The notes: generated from the sequence alone by a model not told the origin. A DNA stretch of 63,353 nucleotides, filler included, from Choristocarpus tenellus KU-1152 (GCA_964200185.2; 10 parts of 10 records of this genome joined end to end with filler, not necessarily neighbours in it); one strand, 5' to 3'; numbered from the whole stretch's first letter, positions 9,657-40,470 are shown. Numbers and translations: made by a program.

Positions 9657-12600
9657 GAATTTTTTTGCTCAGGACATTAAAGGGTAGTCTCAACTCTTCA
9701 TTATTCAGGATGAGCAAACTCTGGTTTGATCATGACTCAGACTTCATTCCCTTTGTTTTTCTTAGATGTCTGGGGCGTATGTTGGTTTGATTTCCTTGCC
9801 TTGTACCTTGGCACTATGATTTCTACAGACAAGGTGTGGTGTGGGGACTTGGAACTTGCAAAGGGCGTTGTCTGGGGGTTGATTGAGTAAAAGGGGTAGA
9901 GGAAGATAGTAAGGGCTTTAGTTTTGTACAAGGCATATGATGCGATGTGTTGTGCAGCTCAGTTGAGTTGAACCTGTTTGGGTGATGGAGAGCCTTTTTG
10001 TTGCTGGTTGACTGGAGTTGTGCAATAAATGTGTACCAGGGGCATGGGATTCTAAGTCTGAATCAGAGGAGGGGGTAGATGTTTTTCATAAATTGTCATA
10101 ATACGAATGCATTTCAACAGGGAGAATGTGGAACGTGTTCACAGATCAGGAAGGGGCTGACTGGAAGTTGTCAGCTCAGTGCAGGGTCGCTGTGAGACAT
10201 TTGTGTGTAACATCGAAACCTGTATTTACCTGTTTGTCCACCTCTGTTAGAAAGCATCAACTAGTCAAGGTATGTGATATGCAAAGCCCATGAGAGTCGT
10301 AGTATGGGTATGATGGCGATGGAACTTTACTGCCGTTGCCATTAAAACTTGAGGGTGTGGTGTTGCATTTTGATGTCAGTGACTGGTATGGTTTAGACAG
10401 TGGTCTTGAGTGTCTCATGGTCAAAACATGTTTTAGAGGGGTAGGTGGAGTCCCCAAGAGGGGTCATGCATGAGATGCATTGGCATTAGATCTTGGTGGT
10501 TTGGGGAGGTCATGACTCCGATGTTATACTCTGGAGTATATACTGGAGGCAAAAAGCTAAAGCCTCAACTTGCAGATGCCTGCCACGTGTTAGTTAATAA
10601 GCAAATGCATACATTAAGCATTGGTTCATTCGTAAGTCATGGAAAAGTCCAAAATGACAATTGAGAGATAATTGCCCCAGTACAACAGGGAAGTGCAACT
10701 ATGAAGCAACTGACATGTCATGTAATGGGTATCAAAGGGAAAGGCATCATTGATGCACAGCATGAACAGCGTCTATTTATTTTTGAGAACAGCTTGCACG
10801 TCAAATTGTGAAGGCTTTAACACAGTTTTTCTGCGAGAGAAACAAGTAGGGTTGGCATCGTCCAGTTCTTTGTCTTGTGAACTAAGAGGTTTCGTGAAAT
10901 AAAATTTCAATCAGTTCAGTCCTCGATGCTTAATCGTGATTAAGCGCCTGGGTCATAGCTTACGGTCAGTGACCAGCGTAGTTGTAAGACAACAAAGCTT
11001 CCATCAAGGTGTTCCAGAGCCCTCCTACAGTTGGACAAATAACAACAAATGGAGGGTAATATCGTTTTGTGCATGTACGAGCCTGTCAGCGTGTGCGATA
11101 CAGACAGGAAGTTGCAGAGGGGTGCGTGCAGGATACTCCGATAGAAAGATAATGGATCTTAAGAAATTCGTGATCACGTATTATTTAACACCACATAAAA
11201 CAATTTAGATAATGGGTATGTAAGCTAATAATATTTATCTTCCCAGGAACCATGATGAATCAGAGATGGGGGTGGTAACCATTGGGTTCCTCGTGAGAAC
11301 TAGGCCTAGTTCGACATGTCAACGCCACCAATCCATCAAGAACAACCCTAGCTCACGTCAAATGAAGAGTCACAATCTGATACGCGATGAACACATGCAA
11401 AATGTTCGAGGGCATCATAATACATATATATGCGATTAAGAGTTGGTAGCGCGTATTGAGACCTATATCATCTATACGACTTCGTCCTTTCCTAAACTGA
11501 ATTTCGTGACCTCTTTCTGAAGGGAATGTAGACAATTATCACCAATACTACTACTGTTGTGTGTGGTGAAAGGCATAATAAGGGGGGGTGTATGTAATTT
11601 ATCACTGCATGAGAAAGAATGCATTGAGAATGTAACTAAATGAATAAGTGGTTACTACATCCATTTCTGGTTCTGTTCTTCTGGTGGTGGTACTACCGTA
11701 GTGAGTTGTCAAGAATACACACAACAAACACAGCCTCTCCCTGTAATTCAATCTTAATACAGCCACCTAAATCAATAAAAAATAACCAACAGCGGTATCC
11801 CTGTACTGTATGTAGTCGTATCTCTATACTTACTAGTATTAATACTTGCATAGAATTCACTACTGTTACTGCTTCAAGAAGAAACACGGTCTACCATAAC
11901 ATTACTGTGAAGCGCATACTACATGCTGCATGTAGCCAGAGGTTTGCTGGACACGCAGTAGGTGCCCAGGTATATTATTGGGATGCCTCATTCATATATA
12001 TTTGCTTTTTTTCTGTACACTATCTTATTCTGTTTGTATTTGCATTTTTAGGGTTAGGGTTGGAATCATTAACAATATGAATGTGGGTGCCCCTATAAAC
12101 CTGGACAACGCGTGCCCAGTAAACCTCCCCCTGGCATACACTATCAGGTTCATCACTATTGTTCTCTCTTGTCATGGTCACTACTGTGTGCACTTTTCTT
12201 CTAGTTAGTTAAGAACTTTCCAGCCTGAAGTCTGGTTCAAAGCGATAATAGATACAAAAAAATGCTTGATGTAGTTACTGTTATGAATCAAACCGAGAGG
12301 TAGATCCCAATAAAGGGAATAAAGATGTCGTCTTGTAGTATTGTAGAAAGAGCCTTCGCTTTAGTGCGGTATGACATTGTGTGTGAAAAGAGGGAAAACA
12401 ATTTTGAGTACTCTAATGTGCTCGTAATAAGTAATAAAATAGAGTGTATTGCACAGAGTAAGATGGCTTGAAATGAAAAAGTGTTCGAACTTGTCTACCT
12501 CTCAACTCATTTGGCCTTGTGACAATGCTGCATCAACGTCTTATGATGCGAATGATAAGCAAGCATGCCCACTGTCTAGCTTAAAGTACATTCCAAGGTA

Positions 12601-12739
12601 TCACTCATCGTGTACAGGGTCGTGTTACCTGGAAATCCACGTCAATTTTCCGTTCATCTAGGTAGAATGAAATGTTACTATCCTCAAGTCCAACCTCCCA
12701 TACCAGACTTGAATGAACTGGATGTTTGTTTCTGGGAAA

Positions 12740-13560
12740 ACCATTACCATGACCAGGTGTAGATCATCAAATATCTCAACCCATTATTGGACAGTACACT
12801 ATTGATAGCATTGTTGGACATAGACCTGGTCCTGGTCGTCATTCGTCCACAAATGCTATATATCGCCTTCATCTTTGTGGCTATGGGCCGTCTTGTGCTC
12901 AACACAAAAGAACAGAACAGATCCCACAATGCCATGAGATGATTGCAGCCTATCTTGTTTCAGTAAATGGATTGGATAACCAATAAAATACTCGTCCCAA
13001 ACGCTGTTGACTTGAGAATTAATATTTACTGTGACCATATTCCTTTGCGTAGTCTGTGTATCATGCATTGCCGTAATAATGTAACCTATCGCTTCAGTAA
13101 AGAGATTATTGCATGTATATGTGGTACAGATCCTCACCAATTTCTATTTAAGCATGTTTGTTTTTCTTACTTGTGTGTCTTGGCCCATATCTCGTGTTAC
13201 CCATATATCACAATCCTTTGCATAGGTTGACCATCTACTTTAGACAAATTGTTTGTATATCATTTTGTCACAGATGGGTAGAGTCTATCGTTTTGTTAAG
13301 AGATTCGATAACTGGTAACAGATGTCAGTTAACGTGTATTCACAACCAGCTCTGAGTTGACATCTCGTGTTTACCTGGTTTACAAATGCTTGCAAATAGA
13401 CTACGTGTATGTTGGTGGCATTTAAATAAATGGATAATAAAATTAATTTAATATCTCAGCTCTCCTCGTTTGCATGAGTGGACACATGTGGTGGTAAAGA
13501 TATGGTATCACGGGGCACATTAGCAACCGTTTGCTAGAGGTGGCTGTTTATTGCATCATG
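12740..13560 (-). pseudogene. Possible heavily decayed non-LTR retrotransposon 3' end
   Basis: Broken CPxx...HLFKC zinc-knuckle-like peptide near 13380-13490 and an LW-containing downstream fragment; many stops. Confidence 0.2.
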
Positions 13561-14082
13561 TCAGATTTTCATGAAATGGAAGTGCTGATCATTATGAAAT
13601 TACTAACCCCATCAAAATCAGGTATTCAAGTCTATCACTAGGTAAGTGATAGAGACTTCAGGTGAGTCATATTTGTTCTTTGTTTTCGAGTGGCATGATC
13701 CCCCCGACATGATGTATTGACCGTATGGTCACCTCGTATCGTTTTTGAGAGTTGAGCCACCAAGATCGTACATCCAAGTTGTTCACTTGGAATATTGTAG
13801 TCGTTGTGAGCAATATTTCCAATCTTTGTCAGAATGTGAGGAAGGAGAATATGTGTGCACATATTGTATCATTGATCTCGTTGTCTGCTCTGTTGATATT
13901 GATCATGAAACATGCGCTTGTGTTTTCACGCATCGTAGTGTTGATCAAAATAATCTCATAACACTTGTGTAGCAACGTCAGATCACAAACACTTGTCAAA
14001 CAGTTTATTGGCATCGTACAGCGTTTGCTCCTCATATAGCCAATCTGAGTATCCCCCATTTATACAAGATACAAGAGACCTA

Positions 14083-14285
14083 GTGCTGACCACATCTACC
14101 TCTCCCCTCGTATTCAGGCTGATCATATTACTGATCACATGCGCTCAGACCTTGACCATGAAGTTGGTCGATACTGACCTCATCCATCAACCTCACTCGT
14201 ATTTAGGCTGACTGGTATGCTGATCCCATATGCTGATCACATATTTGTAGACCGCGGGAGTTTGATTGGTATGCTGACCACATAC
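14083..14285 (+). repeat. Cluster of degenerate (TG)CTGA(C/T)CACAT motifs
   Basis: About seven variants (tgctgaccacat, gctgatcatat, ctgatcacat, ctgacctcat, gctgatcccat...) within 200 bp. Confidence 0.6.
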
Positions 14286-15353
14286 CATCAACCTTCAACG
14301 AATTATGTCCATCAGATATTCATTGCCTCATTTATATTACACTCTATTAATTCAAAGTGAAGTGTAATATAATAATGCAATAGTGTACCATCAATCACAC
14401 CTGTTTCCCATTTTGCTTCCAGAGCTCACTTTTTGGTCGACTTGAAGCATATTTAGATGCCTTCAAGGCCGATCAGAAGGGGAGATGATGAGAAAAGCAG
14501 GTTTGTTATTATTCTGTTATTGCTGTATGCCACATACTGTTACACCTATTGAGGTTTCCTTGTCAGGAATCCCTGATTCTAGTGGAGGATCTTGTGAAGT
14601 GTGGAATATCAAGAGATCAATCCCATAAGTAGTGGACATCTCTTCAGCCAGAGATGTCACACATCAAAGATTCTCTTTGTCATCAAGTCTTGACATTCTG
14701 ATAATCCCCCTCTCTTAAGACCCTCATCACTCCATAATTTCGTGCAAGTCCTTGCAGTCTTACACTTGTCCAAACTCAACCTTGTCCTCTTGGTTACGGT
14801 TCGTCTTGGTTCGTCTTACCCAGTGATTCTCTCCACCACCCTAGCCCTCACTCAGCGTGCTTGGAATTAAAGAGATAGAATTGTGTTATAATGCTATATT
14901 CACCTCTACATGAGGTTGGATCTCTGTTTGTGTACATGCATGGGTCATACTGCATATGTACTCGACTTGAATATTAATAGCCCACACAACCCAGTAGGTT
15001 TTAGTGCTGGAGACACCTTACATCTATGATACTCAACAACTTTACAGTAGCACCAGATTGTTTTTTTCAATGTGATTTGTAAAAATCGTACTCTTTTTCA
15101 TCTCCCCCGAGCACTGGGGCTCTTGAATGACACCGACAGTAAGGGAGTGGTGAGGTTGCAGTGCGAAGGCATCCTGCTGGTCTATTGTATTTCTTATGCT
15201 GTGGACTATGTACATACCTAAAATGTTGGTTTTGGATGCATTCACAGAAACAATGGCAACAGCTGCGGAATAATTGCTACACACACTAGCTCAAAATTCT
15301 GAGACTCATGCTTTCTGGAGTGTTCTTAACCCTCCTTTGCTCTCTCACTTTCC

Positions 15354-32158: not shown

Positions 32159-35100
32159 GCGACAGGTATTCATGCCCAAAGTGCTCCATCACGCATATGG
32201 GCGAATGTGCCTACGTGGAGATTATAGGCGACGAGGGGCACAAGGATCGATTATGTATCAATTGCCCCATGGCACAGGAGGGCAGCGAAGGGTCTGGATC
32301 GGTGGGGAAGGAAGCAGCGGGTCGGGGCAGGGGCAGGGGCAAGGGTAAGGGTAAGGGTAAGGGTAAACGTAACGCAAGGAGCGCGGGCGGGTCACCCACC
32401 AGACAAAGCCTTTTACGTCCCCCCTCACCAAGTAAAACGGGGGACGTGGAGAAGTGCATGTGGGTCTTGGCGTGGTTGCACATTATACGGACGTACAAGT
32501 CGTCTCTGCGTGTTTGTTTTCGCATTGGTTTGCACGTGGGTCTTGGCTGCTTGTACATCATGTGGATTGCTTGTCCTTTGTGCATTGGATGTGTCGTTTT
32601 TTTGGAGGTTTCCATGGGACATGGAACTTACATGGGTGTTTTTACGTCTACCCTCCTTGCTCGAGATGTATCTCATGGGTCTGGCGTTGTGGAGGTTGCG
32701 CCTTGACTTTTCGGGGATGCCGCCGAAATATTGTCAGGACCTCACTTAATGATACGATTGCCTGCACTGTTGTTTACGACGCTGTCCTTCTTGTCGTGCT
32801 GTCTGTATACCGTGTCGTGTATCATGATGTCCATCCAGGACTGAGAACACTGCACTACACGACCTTCGCCCTCTCGACCCCACGATACCCTTAGACGGCC
32901 TGAAAGAGTTCGAGTTCTGTAATGCGCCAAAGCTCGCCATAGTGTCCATTGCCGCCGAGCCAATACTCCTCAACGACAACGAGGCGACCAATGAACACTT
33001 GCGCCAGGTGGTTATGTGCTTGCAGATGAAGCTACATCCTCAGGGCACAATCGCGCTATTTGTGCCCCAGCCGTGGGCCTTGCACTTACACCGCCTACAC
33101 GGTGAGTTTGGGAGTTCGCCAGCACTGAAATACGGGGTATATTGCTGGAGACTATTGCAATCCGCCATGGCCGTTATCAGTCCGTTCGTGTGCTGATCGA
33201 ATATTGTGCGGTCGTTCAGGAGATGCGGATTATGTCGTGTGTCTCTCTTTTTCACTTTCCCCATATCCTTTCATGTTCTTCGTACATTGCATTTCCTTTT
33301 CTTTTTTTTTGTGTCTCTTGCTCTTTCCCCCGGGTCGTTCGTAGTTCTTTGTTTCATTGTACGTGAATCGCATGCTCTAGTGTTAACTTGTCTCCACTAC
33401 ACAATTTTTGACGTCTTTCCTTCTACTACAGAATTTCCTATAGTTTGCATTTTTTTTTCTTCCATTTGTTATTTGCCTTGCGTTCCACAAGAACAGGACT
33501 ATTATAATGTTAGTGGTAATGAGATTTCATGAATATCTACGACAACTACTTGTGTGATGTCACTGTCGAGTTTGACGCATGCCGGACCCACGCGCTCGCT
33601 CCCGCCTTCTCTTCGTTCAGGGGCTCTTATGGCCTCGAAGGCGGCCTTGGTTGTGGAGGATTATCCCCTGCTTATAATATACAAGACGAGGGGGGGGGGG
33701 CGCCCTCTCTCAGGCACGGATAACCATCTCAGATCTTGCCAGGACATGATTCTTCTCGCGCACAACGATGGGACAGAGTTCACATGCAACAAGAGAGTCA
33801 CCGTCGACCAGATCTTTGGCCACGGGCGTCGGGCGTATCCTCCGGTGCTCCAAACCATGTATGACGTCGAATACCAAGGTGCTGCAACGGACATCCCTAT
33901 GAGGGCCCTCCACTTCCTCGTTAACAGGTTCGTTAATAACGTCACGCACACCCTTCTTCACGGTAGCAGCGACTTTTTTTGTACAGGTGTAGAACATCGT
34001 TAAACAGTAACACAACAGGCTGGGTGACGATGCAGGGGCGTCAAACCACACCGCGAGTGACCTTCCCCGAATCAGTATATGTTAAGCATCTGTTTGCACC
34101 AAGAGTGTGTTGCTCTGTGTCGATAGGTTACTCTTCGATGTGTGATATGATGAATCCGTGCGCAATACAACGTATGTACTCTTTGAGATATAATTGACGA
34201 ACTGCCCTCCTATGATAGGTACACGAATGCTGGGGACACCATTGTCTCCTTCAGCGCAGAGAGGCACAATGTGGTGGAGGCGGCCCTTGAACGGAGCAGG
34301 AGGGTGGAGGTGTTCGTGTCCAACGCGGCATTCAAGGACGAGGTGAAAGAGAAGATGAAGATCTCCTTCGCCCAAGCCTACAAGGACGGCAAGTGGAAGG
34401 TAAGAAGGGTGTGCTGGCTTTTTTCCCATTGCTTTCCAACTTGTTGTCTGTCTTATTCTCCTATGGATAGGTCTCGGGCGTGTGATTGTTGTAGTGATGT
34501 TTCCTTGTCGATATTTATACGTTGTTCACACGGTGCACGTGGTTACGCATGCCACAAACGGAAATCGCGAGACCCCAAGACTTTGTGTGTACGCATGCCA
34601 CAAATGTGCTGCAGTACACCTCAAGATCTTGAACCAACGCCGGAATAACCTCAACGTACATGACGAAACCTTATCGCATGGCAAAACACTTTAATGCCAC
34701 ATGGTTGGGCTGTTCATATGTACGCATGTAACGTTGCAGGTATCCACGTCTCTCGTTCAAGAACGCGTGATAGGCCCTTCCTGCCTGCCGGAAGCCTTGG
34801 GGCAGACCCTCGTCCCAATTGAGACGCATCGATGTTTTGCTGAGGCCGTCAATCCTCAGGGAAAGGCGATGGGACACGATGAGGCGACCATTTTCGTTGC
34901 AAAGGCGGTGGCGACGGACTTCGGCTACCAGATCGAGGTGAATGTGGTATAGAATGCACTTTGTTACATATTTTGTGAAGATCAAATGGCAGAGTCAACA
35001 TCTTGGCACGCAGAATAAGCTCTTTTTTTAATTCCAGAGTCCGAACCTATCTAATGCACCACCCAAATACGTCGCTTAGAAAACTATGGGTCTTGGCGGG

Positions 35101-36299
35101 TAAAAGAGTATTTGATCCGTTGTGTCCTCAACGCGAGCCAAAGTATCTTTAAAGGGTACGACTGCGTCCATTTGGGGGCCAAAACCCAATGTTGTGATTT
35201 TGATGTTGTTTTGGCTATCGTGTTTGTTAGGAAGTGTCAATATGTTTGTTCCAGACACACCTCTTCATAACGTATACAATTTACCTACTCCCAAACATTT
35301 CAGAGTTGATAGAACATCATAAAAAAAAAAACGTGAAGCCAAGCACCAAATGGACAAACAGGGCAAGACTCGTGTACCCTCCAAGATACTTTCACTCACG
35401 TTTGCCACAATAAGGTTGACGTTTTTGCACCACCTTCGGATGAGATTACCTCCAAAAAGCATTACATTCATGAATGACCGAACTCTGCCCCCCCCCCCAA
35501 CCCTACCGCCGTCTTTGTCTTCCACAATGCTCAGCCACGTGTAAGCTCGTCCTCAAATCCTGCAGAAATGGCCTTATTCCCGCTTGAAGGGAAAGACTAC
35601 AAGATCGGCGGAAATGACCTCCCTGCGTGGGGTGATCTCCAAGTGTGCAACTCTCGATCGGAGGCCTTCAGTTCGATCTCTCTTGAAGACCAAGAAAAAC
35701 AGTGCATTCGGCTGCTTCATGTGGCCAACAACAGACAACTCAAGCGCATGCTTTTGCCTGGAATGGAGGTGTGTGAGCCGCACGCAGAGCTCTACTTGCG
35801 CGTGGCAGCCACTTGCCCTCTGTACTACATGCGTTGGACCGAGAAAGGAGACGACGCAAACATTGAATTCACATCACAAGTTCCGCAGAGCGGAAGCCGT
35901 GACCAGGTCCTCCTCCCCTTCTCCCAGATTGGCCACGGGCAGATGTTCGTCACGCCCATAGTTGGGAGGGTGTGCAAACCCCGGGCAAAGGATGACACCA
36001 GATCACCATTCAACGTGCTCCCGGGTCTTACGGTAGTGCGTTCTCGTGGGTTCGAAGTGATGGATTCGGACTCGAACTTGACACCAATGACCACTAGAAA
36101 GCGCAAGTGTCCCTCTTCCGGCACGGGTGGAAAGGGAAAAGGTCGTGAGGTATGCAGGGGCGCCGGTGATTCTGGCATGGAAGACAAGCCGGAGTATGTC
36201 AGCGACGTGGAGGAGGATGAGGAAGAAACGGATGATGAAGAAACGGATGATGAAGTGTGTATGATAGAGGAGGGTGATCGGGATGATGAAATGGAGTAA
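32159..36299 (+). CDS. 5'-truncated multidomain chromatin protein: PHD-like Zn finger + degenerate beta-class N6A/N4C DNA methyltransferase-like domain + degenerate SET-like domain + acidic tail; exons <32159-32453, 32839-33101, 33621-33927, 34219-34399, 34740-34937, 35535-36299
   Basis: Six exons join through GT-AG introns (phases 2,1,2,0,0) into about 668 stop-free codons. Motifs: CPKCSITHMGEC...LCINC; LHPQGTIALF; LIIYK...QDMILL; IPMRALHFLVNRYTNAGDTIVSF...VVEAALERSRRV; IEPRVSSSSNPAEMALF...WGDL...CPLYYM...ANIEF. The gene model is better supported than the domain calls. Confidence 0.75.
35135..35397 (-). mobile_element. Family-A MITE in intron 5 of the MTase/SET-like gene
   Basis: GAGCCAAAGTATCTT...AAGATACTTTCACTC, flanks ACGC/ACGT. 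Confidence 0.92.
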
Positions 36300-38397
36300 G
36301 AAGAGAATCGGGACGGGGGGTGGGAAGTAGGGAGGGGGGGGGGGGGAGAGGCGGGCGGGCGCACACGTTGGCAAAGTAATGATTGACCAATGGCAAACAG
36401 AGCATACGGAAGTGTTTTTTTGTTGATGATGCCTCGTTCGTGTGTCTGTTAAACTTCTGGTAACATGCTTACCAGAGTTGGCGCCTATTTTGCTTCTTGC
36501 GGTGGCAGGGGGAGGGGTACAACGAATGAGCAGCAAATTGATAAAGCTGGTGTTTTTTTTTTTTCTAACCATATTTTTGCTCTGGCCTGTTGTCGCCCTA
36601 TTCTCCCTGTTGTTTCTCTTGCGATATGTGACAAGTCCAACAAGTTTCCCGAAAATATAGATAAATGCAGATCGGAGTATCTGACAGGGGGTGGGAGGGG
36701 GTGCAGATTGCAACAAACGATAATTCGGACAAGACTGAGATATATTCATAGAATAAGGTCGATCATCATATATAATCTCAATACTTACATGCGCTCAGTG
36801 GTAGCTTCTTCTTCTACTTGGTGATGATAGCAATAATTGATAAACAATTTAATAATATGGTAAAATAACACTTCTCTTCTTCTTCTCACTCAGTCGACCA
36901 TCCATAATGACAATGAAACGCCGCCTCGAAAGAAACTACATCGAAGTACTATTTTTTTGTACCACCTCCACCATCAACAGTCAAACGACTCCACCGACGG
37001 CACTAATTATTCAAGCAAGCAATCCAACGCAGGGCATACATGTGCACGGCGATCAAATGAAATCATTGCCGCCCCCCACACACTGTCCTACTACCACCTT
37101 CGGCATGGATTCCCATTCAAAAAGTGGCACTTAAAAAGTGCCGCAACATTTTCAAAAAAATATGTATGGGCACTTTCTGCGCACCATTTTGGGTAAAATC
37201 CATCCTCCATTTTGCCGAGACGCTGTTATTTGAACTAGTTGCTTAAAGGTCATTTCTTCTTCATACATATAAATACATGAAGGAAAGAAAAAAATACTGT
37301 TTTTACAGATGTATAATTTTACTTTTTAGCCCCACAACATCATACACATACTATTAGTATAGGAATTGACAGAAACATTCCACAAACATAACAAATATTT
37401 TCGACCATCAGAAAAATTGTATGTAATAAGAAAACTAGGGTGGTGTCAGGGAAAAAATATTGAATCGGTTGTGTTCTCCACAAATAAATGCAACAACATT
37501 GAAAAGTATGGTTCCTACCAGTCCTTCAACATGCAGATGTTTGGTATGATGGAGGGTGGGAGAATGAAGATCCAGATGATGTGAGACATGTTGTGAGACA
37601 TGCATACAAACTACTCATTACTCATTACTTCCTTCTTGCGTATGTATATATATATTTGGGTTGGGCACTGCCTATTAAGCACGGTCTGTGTTTGTGCCTT
37701 ATTTTCTTATTACATGCGTACATCGCATGTCTGCATGTGATCGATGCCAAGAAAGTGGTGAAGTGGGAAACTGAAAAAAAATAGTACATGAATAATGTAT
37801 CCACTAATAGTATCTTGTAGTTGTTATCAAGGGTATAAAAAAGTACGGTTTGAACTCTCAACGAAGAAACACTACGCGCTTCAAGAGTGTAAGAGTTTTT
37901 TCCACTCCACTTCTTGTGAATACTTTTTTTTTTTTTGAACGCAAGCGTATTTTATTCTGGTGAATGTCTTGTTAATACTATTGGAGTTCGAATTTATGAT
38001 GCGACCTTCTGCCTATCGATTTACGCACTGGATTTGTAGTCCACTATAGAGGTCCTGGCCGACGCCTATCTTCTATCATCTGGAGTATGCACAAGCTCCA
38101 CACAAAATATTCCCTGTCCTTTTAACACCGCTGGGTCGTTTTCTGTATCATATCATCAACTTGCTTTTGTTTGGAATTGAGCTCTGTAGATGACTACTCT
38201 GATTACATGTGACATTTCACTAAGTGAATCTATCAGCAAACTCAAGTCATGAGGAGATGACAAACGGACATAACCTCAAAAAGCTCCCATTAAGAGGCGA
38301 GATGCACTAACCAGCCACTTCAGTGTTGTCTTCCCCTACATCACCACCTGGGCCCTAATCTTGGCCTCGTATGGCATACTGTGTGATGCATCCCTTG

Positions 38398-40470
38398 TCA
38401 TTCCTCTGGTCCTGTCTGGGACTGCATGGCAGAATAGAACCTACGAAGGGACACAACCACCTCTCCAAAACTGGAGGGGCGTATCACACGCTGGGAGATC
38501 CACCTAGGAAGCAGTCCAATTACCTGTAGTATTGTTCAAAGCCATGGGGGAAAGTGACGTTTGACTGTATGGACCTGAAGGCAATGGGCAGTGCATCATA
38601 TGTATGTTCGTAGAGCAGAGGGTATTGAAGTAGGGTATGTAGTACAACACACTATTGAAGGATATACGAAACGCGATGGGGGGTTGAGGACAGCACACTC
38701 CTCGCCTATCCACTCAAGCTCTACTGGAATCCCCAAAAAAAGAAAAAAAAAGATATTGAACCAAGAGAGTAAATGAACATAGAGGGCGCCGGGCTTCTAC
38801 TTCATGGTCGGTCTTATGGAGGCTTCTAGTTATTTTCATTATAGTAGTATACCATCATAATAAATACTGTAAATGGGACAGAGTATGGAACAAAATATTT
38901 TCTCACAACTCATTTCTTTTCGATGAAAAACACCATACGACTTAGGGAACACCCCCCGCTTGTCGTCACGACAATGATTGGTGTTTGTATCTTGTCCCAG
39001 CCGTAAAAAAAAAAAGGTCTACTCACGTGGTTGTCGCCATATCGCTGGTCCACCAGAAGGATACTGGAGTAGTCCTTAGCATGCCTGATGGAGCGACCAA
39101 TGGATTGGTTCACTGCTCGCATGCAAATATTCTGGTAGAACTCCCTGCCAGCACGGCCTCGACTGGAGAATTGGGTATGAAAAGGCAAGTAATGGGGTCT
39201 TACTCTCTTAGGACAATGCCACAGCAATTCACCAAAACCCTAGGATTGGGATAGCGTTTCAACTTTGCCAATTAAATATGGTGTATCGGGTTGAGCATTC
39301 TTGGACGAACTTCAGTCAATGTCTGCACCCAAACTGCCTCCAAATTTTTGAACACTCATGTTTACACCATGCTATCACAACATGTAGACAATAGAGGATA
39401 TCATTGTGTGTGTGTGTGTGTTTAGTTTGAAACATTTTCTCATGAACATTTCCTCAGATACTAAAGAGGTCTACAACTGAGAATAACTACTCCAGAGGAT
39501 AGCGTATGTACCCGATAGATAGACTCTGGGGACTTCTCTCATTTTCAGACTGTTCTCATAGTTCTCATAGTATGCCTGTCTAAAACCGCATCATAGTCTT
39601 CTGTGCTTCAGCAAAGCATGATAAATAATACAACGTACTGTTGTGATTTAGGAAGGCGTTCATTCCAAGCAAGACTCAATCTCTTGTTATCTTGATAAAA
39701 TTCTCCACTCTCCCCCCCGTGGGCAACATCAGGGTCTTTGTCCGATTTTCATTTTGAAGCCAGTTTTTCTTCCTTTACATTTCATCCATATTTCTATTGA
39801 TGAAGTGAGTGAAAGCATCTTAGAGGGTGACGAGTTTTGACCTGTTTGTCCGTTTGGGGCTTGACTTACCACCATTTTTTTTTAATAACATTTTCCTACT
39901 CCGAAAAGTTTCGGAGTAGGTAAAATGTGTACATTTTAGAGTAGGTATGAAAAGGTGTGTCCATCCAGAACAAGGATAATGACACCTCCTAACAAACACA
40001 ATAGCCAGAATTACGTCAAAATTTCAGCATTGGATTTTGACCCCCAAAATGGACGCGGCTCTACCCTCTAAGATACTTCGACTCAAGCGTTAAGTTGGAC
40101 TGTTGATCTCCATTGTTTGAGACATTTCGACAGAATCCAGCAACTATCCTACACGAATTTGTTAGCTGAATTTTGCACATATTTGTCAGCGTCTTTATAA
40201 TGAAACTCTGGGTACCTCTTGTTTACTTTGACTCTCTGTGAAATGCCAGGTATGTAACAAAAGTACTGCGAAACCAACAAAAAATGGACCATTGATATTA
40301 TCACTACTAAATCTCCAGTGCTACCATATGGCGCTAGACGGACTAACCGCCCATTACAACCTAAAGTGCAGGAGTACCTGTCCGGATTTGTCGCGTCCAG
40401 GTAGTCCATCTTCTGCCTCAGCTCTGGATCGCGCTTATCTGGATAGGGCAGGCCAACCATGACAACACAC
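38398..40470 (-). CDS. DDX11: DDX11/Chl1 (XPD-family Fe-S DNA helicase), C-terminal exons 40470-40378, 39162-39027, 38523-38398
   Basis: [20 protein letters not shown]; [31 protein letters not shown] (motif VI); LPRWI...FG; junctions are in phase. Confidence 0.9.
39807..40084 (+). mobile_element. Family-A MITE in a DDX11 intron
   Basis: GAGTGAAAGCATCTTAGAGGGT / ACCCTCTAAGATACTTCGACTC, flanks AAGT/AAGC. Confidence 0.92.

Follow-up and report, generated by a model that had tools for sequence, protein, structure and literature searches.

Giant transposons of algae carry accessory genes with methyltransferase (MTase) domains, as has already been published (PMC12477816; bioRxiv 10.1101/2025.02.11.637652). 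Sola1-1_Ec32 of Ectocarpus (Dinatale et al. 2025) is 21.5 kb long, with AACCG-CGGTT termini and a 4-bp target-site duplication (TSD), and has an opposite-strand gene for a 1104-aa protein that combines a ParB-like domain with an N4C/N6A MTase domain and for which methylation was predicted (PMC12477816). PAG2 is an accessory gene of red-algal Plavaka, Zisupton, and Mutator elements that combines PF01555 with SET (Petroll et al., Bostrychia genome preprint, bioRxiv 10.1101/2025.02.11.637652). Inactive MTase domains have been described for DIRS1 elements and for clade-4 proteins of fungi (PMC4738411). Published work took the MTase-like cargo of giant algal transposons to methylate the element. 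Here we describe a gene at positions 32,159 to 36,299 of a 63,353-nucleotide stretch of Choristocarpus tenellus KU-1152 DNA (GCA_964200185.2; ten parts joined end to end with filler; hereafter, the window). By analogy with its relatives, it is inferred to be the 3' part of a spliced cargo gene near the right end of a giant Sola-1 type transposon. On balance, we favor a product that serves this transposon as a non-catalytic helper binding DNA or chromatin.

Apart from DNMT2, DNA methyltransferases are reportedly absent from brown algae (PMC13076208), and these algae do not figure in a recent survey of N6-methyladenine (6mA) (PMC12695648). Brown algae and their transposons are in conflict over chromatin. 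To our knowledge, DNA methylation and PRC2 have been lost in these algae. A preliminary description of the locus, made from the sequence alone, proposed an intact spliced gene encoding a double pseudo-enzyme that would point to an uncharacterized chromatin system of 6mA or N4-methylcytosine (4mC) in this lineage.

Relatives, Copy Number, and Related Sola-1 Transposons

The closest protein relatives were found in Choristocarpus tenellus itself (84-90% identity), followed by Ectocarpus, Ascophyllum, Scytosiphon, and Hapterophycus, and every named relative was a brown alga. Exon 3 had 45 relatives at E<=0.001, none of them prokaryotic by the available names. The C. tenellus paralogues were 81-86% identical to the window at the DNA level, introns included, and had a family of MITEs (transposable elements of the miniature inverted-repeat type) in common with it; those examined (L011-L013) carried stops, a frameshift, and MITE insertions. 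Three public sequencing runs contained the stretch, one RNA-like (X1) and two DNA-like. In the DNA-like runs, 12,000-15,000 contigs, 80-99% alike, lay over exons and introns, and summed depth was thousands to tens of thousands in the element and 4-20 beyond about 37230; the contig of the unique flank begins at 37200. These contigs and the paralogues L011-L013 reveal a dispersed multi-copy family with polymorphic flanks, with a copy number somewhere between hundreds and one or two thousand, a crude figure because summed contig depth is not an exact copy number. A single-copy host gene was therefore rejected by depth and paralogues, and the locus is instead one copy of a high-copy transposon.

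Homologous exons were present in the same order in Ectocarpus (L001, L003, and L007) and in L005, L006, L008-L010, and L014, which belong to an assembly 98.8% identical to Ascophyllum nodosum. Ascophyllum-type copies had 13-16 kb in common at 98-99% identity, with abrupt ends. Complete relatives showed an element of ~17.8 kb with ~720-bp imperfect terminal inverted repeats (TIRs) and AACAG-CTGTT termini, the TIRs and termini being seen in L005/L009/L010, and the 4-bp TSDs ACTG and CTTA were found in two complete relative copies. The Ectocarpus copies and the window copy also terminate in CTGTT, the latter at the depth edge. In relatives, a transposase gene (DUF7869, E 5e-21) lies head-to-head with the cargo gene, and its zinc and catalytic-core motifs agree by inspection with those of the published Sola1-1_Ec32 transposase, motif for motif. 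L003 and L005/L006 also have the transposase upstream, as does L007 by visual inspection, and it was of the Sola-1 DDE type in L003 and L005/L010.

Two other classifications were considered. A Helitron, suggested by CTAG at 37234, was rejected on two grounds: the copies end alike in CTGTT, and TIRs with 4-bp TSDs occur in relatives. KDZ cargo was considered for L007 from a downstream Ulp1/C48 gene; upstream, however, L007 carries a Sola-type zinc motif. This Peptidase_C48 gene (L007:20883-24195) lies downstream of the homologue in Ectocarpus and could be either cargo or a SENP8-like gene of the host.

Several further observations concern element structure. Depth at window positions 36900-37200 was 5-10x that of the element body, which suggests long TIRs and many non-autonomous derivatives with the same end. 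L009:3051-15865 is a 12.8-kb internally deleted Ascophyllum-type copy with both ends and the TSD intact, and the Ascophyllum-type TIRs (L009) contain a pair of 129-bp repeats. The accessory gene of one A. nodosum copy holds a 1.9-kb insertion (L014:5580-7448), the upstream part of the Ectocarpus gene includes a 244-bp palindromic stretch that is possibly an assembly artefact (L001:2774-3014), and EsV-1-7 domain genes lie ~4 kb beyond the right end of another element (L006:17061-18125).

In three divergent subfamilies the cargo gene is constantly paired head-to-head with the transposase, an arrangement that would also suit a structural transposase partner, involved in transpososome assembly or insertion-site choice like the Harbinger Myb/SANT protein and not in anti-silencing, for which the 129-bp repeats could be binding sites. 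However, most described Sola-1 elements move by transposase alone, and related red-algal cargo hops between transposon superfamilies, fitting a transposase-independent chromatin role. We consider a transposase partner decidedly unlikely.

Gene Structure and Splicing

As shown in Table 1, six exons were located within 32166-36299 (+). They total 2008 nt and give exactly 668 codons after a leading phase base, confirming the in-phase, stop-free frame of about that length proposed earlier. No internal stop was found across the joined 668-codon reading frame, and the split codons likewise were not stops. All five introns are of the GT..AG type with compatible phases, and GC content was 54-58% in exons versus 43-49% in introns. 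Ectocarpus sp. CCAP 1310/34 (L001) has the same six exons with their order unchanged.

Run X1 has no record as RNA; its depth was strongly exon-enriched, and it was the sole run with joints at exon borders. These joints (32459>32839, about 33099/33101>33620 for the proposed 33101>33621, 33927>34219, and 34399>34740) correspond to four of the five junctions and are of the GT..AG type. The joints listed for X1 did not include the one between exons 5 and 6, which is present in the NCBI gene models of the C. tenellus paralogues P0008 and P0009. Because the X1 contigs stem from family members 80-99% alike and not provably from the window copy, the junctions proposed in the preliminary description are upheld for the family and not for this copy.

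The piece does not hold the whole gene, which that description called intact. An acceptor AG at 32164-32165 precedes the exon at 32166, and paralogue L012 has an intron upstream at this place, indicating that the exon is internal and that the gene is 5'-truncated by the edge of the piece. Relatives extend 5' of this region by several exons, and ~400 further residues are expected upstream of the window part. Window exons were searched singly, and multi-exon tests used the annotated natural homologues P0057, P0059, P0008, and P0009.

Table 1. Features of the cargo gene, its 3' flank, and the MITE in intron 5 (window coordinates).
Feature	Coordinates	Strand	Remarks
Exon 1 in the piece (internal coding exon)	32166..32459	+	PHD-like C4HC3 finger, its last six ligands (C-x2-C-x3-H-x3-C-x16-C-x2-C), then an RG/KG-rich basic linker; pattern kept in L001, L005, L012; donor confirmed by joint 32459>32839
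Exon 2	32839..33101	+	Putative beta-class amino-MTase fold starts; SIAAEP, not DPPY, at the motif IV position
Exon 3	33621..33927	+	Middle of the putative MTase fold and target-recognition region; 45 relatives, joints
Exon 4	34219..34399	+	SAM-binding half of the putative MTase fold; SFSAERH, not FxGxG, at the motif I position
Exon 5	34740..34937	+	Helical pre-SET-like segment and first SET strand (likely); exon 5-6 join in P0008/P0009
Last exon	35535..36299	+	Degenerate SET/PR-like domain (likely), basic stretch, acidic tail, TAA stop
3' untranslated region and transposon right terminal region	36300..37227	+	Ends in ...GCTGTT at 37227; CTGTT common to L001, L003, L005, L006, L009, L014; depth drop beyond
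MITE (~270 bp) in intron 5, window copy only, not part of the gene	35126..35397		~24-nt TIRs; very high depth

The Methyltransferase-Like Region

Structural comparison of homologues supports the assignment of exons 2-4 to a beta-class amino-MTase fold with the motif order kept, in line with the N6_N4_Mtase-like region described earlier. The ten nearest Atlas structures to P0057 residues 487-740, which correspond to exons 2-4, were all PF01555, with TM 0.63-0.66 over ~210 residues. Foldseek ranked M1.MboII and M1.HpyAVI first (E 0.014-0.05) for our own model of this region (pLDDT 59), and the only long structural alignments of the model (147-188 aa) were to beta-class MTases, including rotifer N4CMT. 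Pfam gave no match, PF01555 included, for single exons or natural homologues, and PHROGs and PDB-sequence searches of both returned nothing informative.

Neither motif IV (DPPY or (D/S/N)PP(Y/F/W)) nor the FxGxG of motif I was present in any of the 7+7 homologous stretches examined. By family member, the motif IV position reads SIAAE, SIGAE, DLTRE, or NVGAF, and the motif I position SFSAE, SLSAE, LFGAE, or GIGVE. The catalytic and S-adenosylmethionine (SAM)-binding motifs, whose loss had been noted in the window copy, are thus lost family-wide among the homologues compared. A paralogue retaining DPPY/FxGxG, for which the preliminary description had left room, was found neither among the 45 exon-3 relatives nor among the other loci compared, which is not a whole-genome search.

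These results bear on the proposal of a host 6mA/4mC chromatin system in which this protein would pair, in an inactive METTL14-like role, with an active amino-methyltransferase. Beta-class MTases often dimerise, inactive partners exist in MT-A70 clades and fungal clade 4 (PMC4738411), and domains resembling chromatin readers are present here. Against this, the gene is transposon-borne, its copies are mostly decaying, and no motif-intact relative occurs among those found. A host-system reading is weakened by the report that brown algae have no DNA methyltransferase but DNMT2 (PMC13076208), and we regard such a partner as very improbable.

The SET-Like, PHD-Like, and N-Terminal Regions

Exons 5-6 are likely, but not proven, to be SET-like. 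In the corresponding region of P0059 (model pLDDT 55), 35 of the 50 best structural rows were SET/PR domains with 90-134 aligned residues, although Z was only 3.0-4.7, and all non-SET rows aligned <=64 residues. Atlas features gave SET at 0.80, with SET in 10/10 named matches. Foldseek (PDB, BFVD) and Atlas structure searches with the SET-like model gave nothing significant, Pfam and PDB-profile searches were negative, and a profile comparison found the MTase-like and SET-like domains unrelated. The motifs GxG, NHS, and ELxxxY (terminal tyrosine) were not conserved in the SET-like alignment. Of the SET domain without NHS proposed earlier, the absence of NHS therefore stands, while the fold itself is moderately supported.

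PRDM9 is active without an NHS motif, so that loss of NHS alone is no proof of inactivity. An enzyme might accordingly persist in the MTase or SET fold, acting through a non-canonical site on element DNA or RNA, a histone, or another protein. Both folds are full length and under selection, the best SET-like matches include PR domains, and the published annotations of Sola1-1_Ec32 and PAG2 predict methylation. However, the motif IV and I positions also vary among subfamilies (SIAA, DLTR, NVGA; SFSAE, LFGAE, GIGVE), and the SET-like alignment contains neither a conserved glycine motif nor the C-terminal tyrosine. Residual enzyme activity thus seems unlikely to us.

The cysteine cluster of the first exon is supported, by its ligand pattern, as the rear six ligands of a PHD-type C4HC3 finger. 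In L001 and L005 the C4HC3 order is complete across two exons, the preceding exon supplying the first C-x2-C; counting these two ligands of the missing exon bears out the PHD-like finger of the preliminary description. The window exon has the spacing x3-H-x3 rather than the usual x4-H-x2, Pfam gave no match for the window half of the finger, and the finger is absent from the Ectocarpus P0057 subfamily.

Purifying Selection on the Cargo Gene

Exon by exon, dN/dS was 0.31-0.37 versus Ectocarpus and 0.38-0.60 versus paralogues. Changes private to the window copy comprised 18 synonymous and 15 non-synonymous substitutions and no stop (411 codons). With an expected synonymous share of 0.23-0.29, the synonymous excess had p 1e-4 to 2e-3, and private-branch dN/dS was 0.26-0.35. 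Paralogue L012, with a synonymous:non-synonymous ratio of 2:10 plus a stop, looks neutral. By its substitution pattern, the window copy comes from a lineage that remained functional under purifying selection until recent times, and not from the neutrally decaying copies that the preliminary description had envisaged as a possible outcome.

A captured gene fragment without function for the element, that is, a neutral passenger, would be compatible with the many copies that carry stops, frameshifts, or MITE insertions. It is opposed by an exon structure kept from Choristocarpus to Ectocarpus and Ascophyllum and by spliced transcripts, and it is largely refuted because of the dN/dS of ~0.3; we give it almost no credence.

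MITE Insertions and the Flanking Host Gene

The MITE in intron 5 (Table 1) is missing at this site in paralogues L011-L013, and a second, inverted copy lies at 39805-40085. It belongs to an abundant ~270-bp family with ~24-nt TIRs ending TCA/TGA, also found at L011:1282-1539 and L012:1660-1919, and was independently inserted in three element copies (intron 5, exon 5, and intron 2) and in the helicase intron. From its probable 3-bp target, it looks Harbinger-like. The helicase gene is represented by window positions 38910-39227 and 40149-40460 (-), which are exons of the C-terminal domain of a host XPD/DDX11/RTEL-type helicase (Helicase_C_2, E 9e-15 and 0.011); this gene points toward the right end of the transposon.

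Proposed Role and Comparison with Known Systems

A non-catalytic helper of the transposon could have arisen as follows. A SET-like domain would have been fused with a prokaryote-type beta-class amino-methyltransferase, a pairing that red-algal transposon cargo shows as well. The cargo gene is transcribed away from the transposase out of a common central region in relatives, and presumably also in the window copy. The canonical catalytic and SAM-binding motifs are gone from both folds, yet the protein was kept by purifying selection. The N-terminal ParB-like region and the groove of the MTase fold may bind DNA of the element itself. Nucleosomes may be engaged by the other parts: PHD-like finger, basic linker, SET-like fold, and acidic tail. 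The outcome would be that expression, excision, or insertion of the element is favored against host silencing.

Several points weigh against this proposal. The left end and transposase of the window copy lie outside the piece, and its Sola-1 status is therefore inferred. Support for the folds was obtained with homologues and with models of low confidence (pLDDT 55-59), with no Foldseek match at E<=0.001 and Z <8. The ParB-like N-terminal call derives from the literature and a weak KorB match (E 0.038) that was not reproduced in further profile searches, and the accessory protein was likened to that of Sola1-1_Ec32 by published description, not by sequence alignment.

A bolder version holds that brown-algal Sola-1 elements have kept, since the earliest brown-algal split, a double pseudo-enzyme (dead amino-MTase and dead SET, with ParB-like and PHD-like parts) as a sequence-specific anti-silencing or chromatin-targeting factor, in a lineage that has neither DNA methylation nor PRC2. 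We put this forward tentatively, as a possibility that is rather doubtful in its full form. If true, it would be the first such anti-silencing factor outside plant VANDAL elements and would account for the expansion to ~thousand copies here. Since the motifs are gone everywhere examined and the protein is under selection, the question becomes one of binding rather than of a new DNA mark.

Compared with known systems, Sola1-1_Ec32 is alike in being a giant Sola-1 element with AAC-type termini, a 4-bp TSD, a long imperfect TIR, and an opposite-strand accessory gene of ~1100 aa with an N4C/N6A-type MTase domain. In contrast, its termini are AACCG-CGGTT rather than the AACAG-CTGTT of the brown-algal family studied here, and the paper reports a ParB-like and an MTase domain only, with no motif loss, PHD-like finger, or SET-like end mentioned. 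Within an incomplete literature coverage, no paper was found that describes brown-algal cargo as catalytically degenerate or as having SET-like or PHD-like parts. Four features are new: motif loss across the family, the C4HC3 finger, a brown-algal version with a SET-like end, and purifying selection (dN/dS ~0.3).

PAG2 is likewise a transposon accessory gene combining a PF01555 DNA methylase with SET, suggesting that this cargo architecture reaches from red to brown algae, the SET part of the latter being likely and not proven. However, InterPro detects the domains of PAG2 (PF01555, PF00856), whereas the window exons have no Pfam match; in the red-algal system a separate gene, PAG3, encodes the ParB-like domain, and the carrier superfamily is another, so that the two are likened by architecture, not descent. 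Beta-class amino-MTases (M.RsrI, M1.MboII, CcrM, M1.HpyAVI, and rotifer N4CMT) have the same fold and motif order, but the cargo protein is without DPPY/SPPY and FxGxG and is the product of a multi-domain, intron-containing transposon gene. DIRS1-type retrotransposons are also mobile elements that retain a catalytically degenerate adenine-MTase fold, although theirs is of the PCIF1-like group, within a retroelement polyprotein and with no SET or PHD (PMC4738411). VANC of VANDAL elements resembles the role proposed here, as an element-encoded accessory protein acting on the chromatin of its own element; it is an unrelated plant protein, and it opposes 5-methylcytosine, which brown algae lack. 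The locus thus belongs, as a variant, to a recently described kind of algal transposon cargo and does not represent a new system of host methylation.

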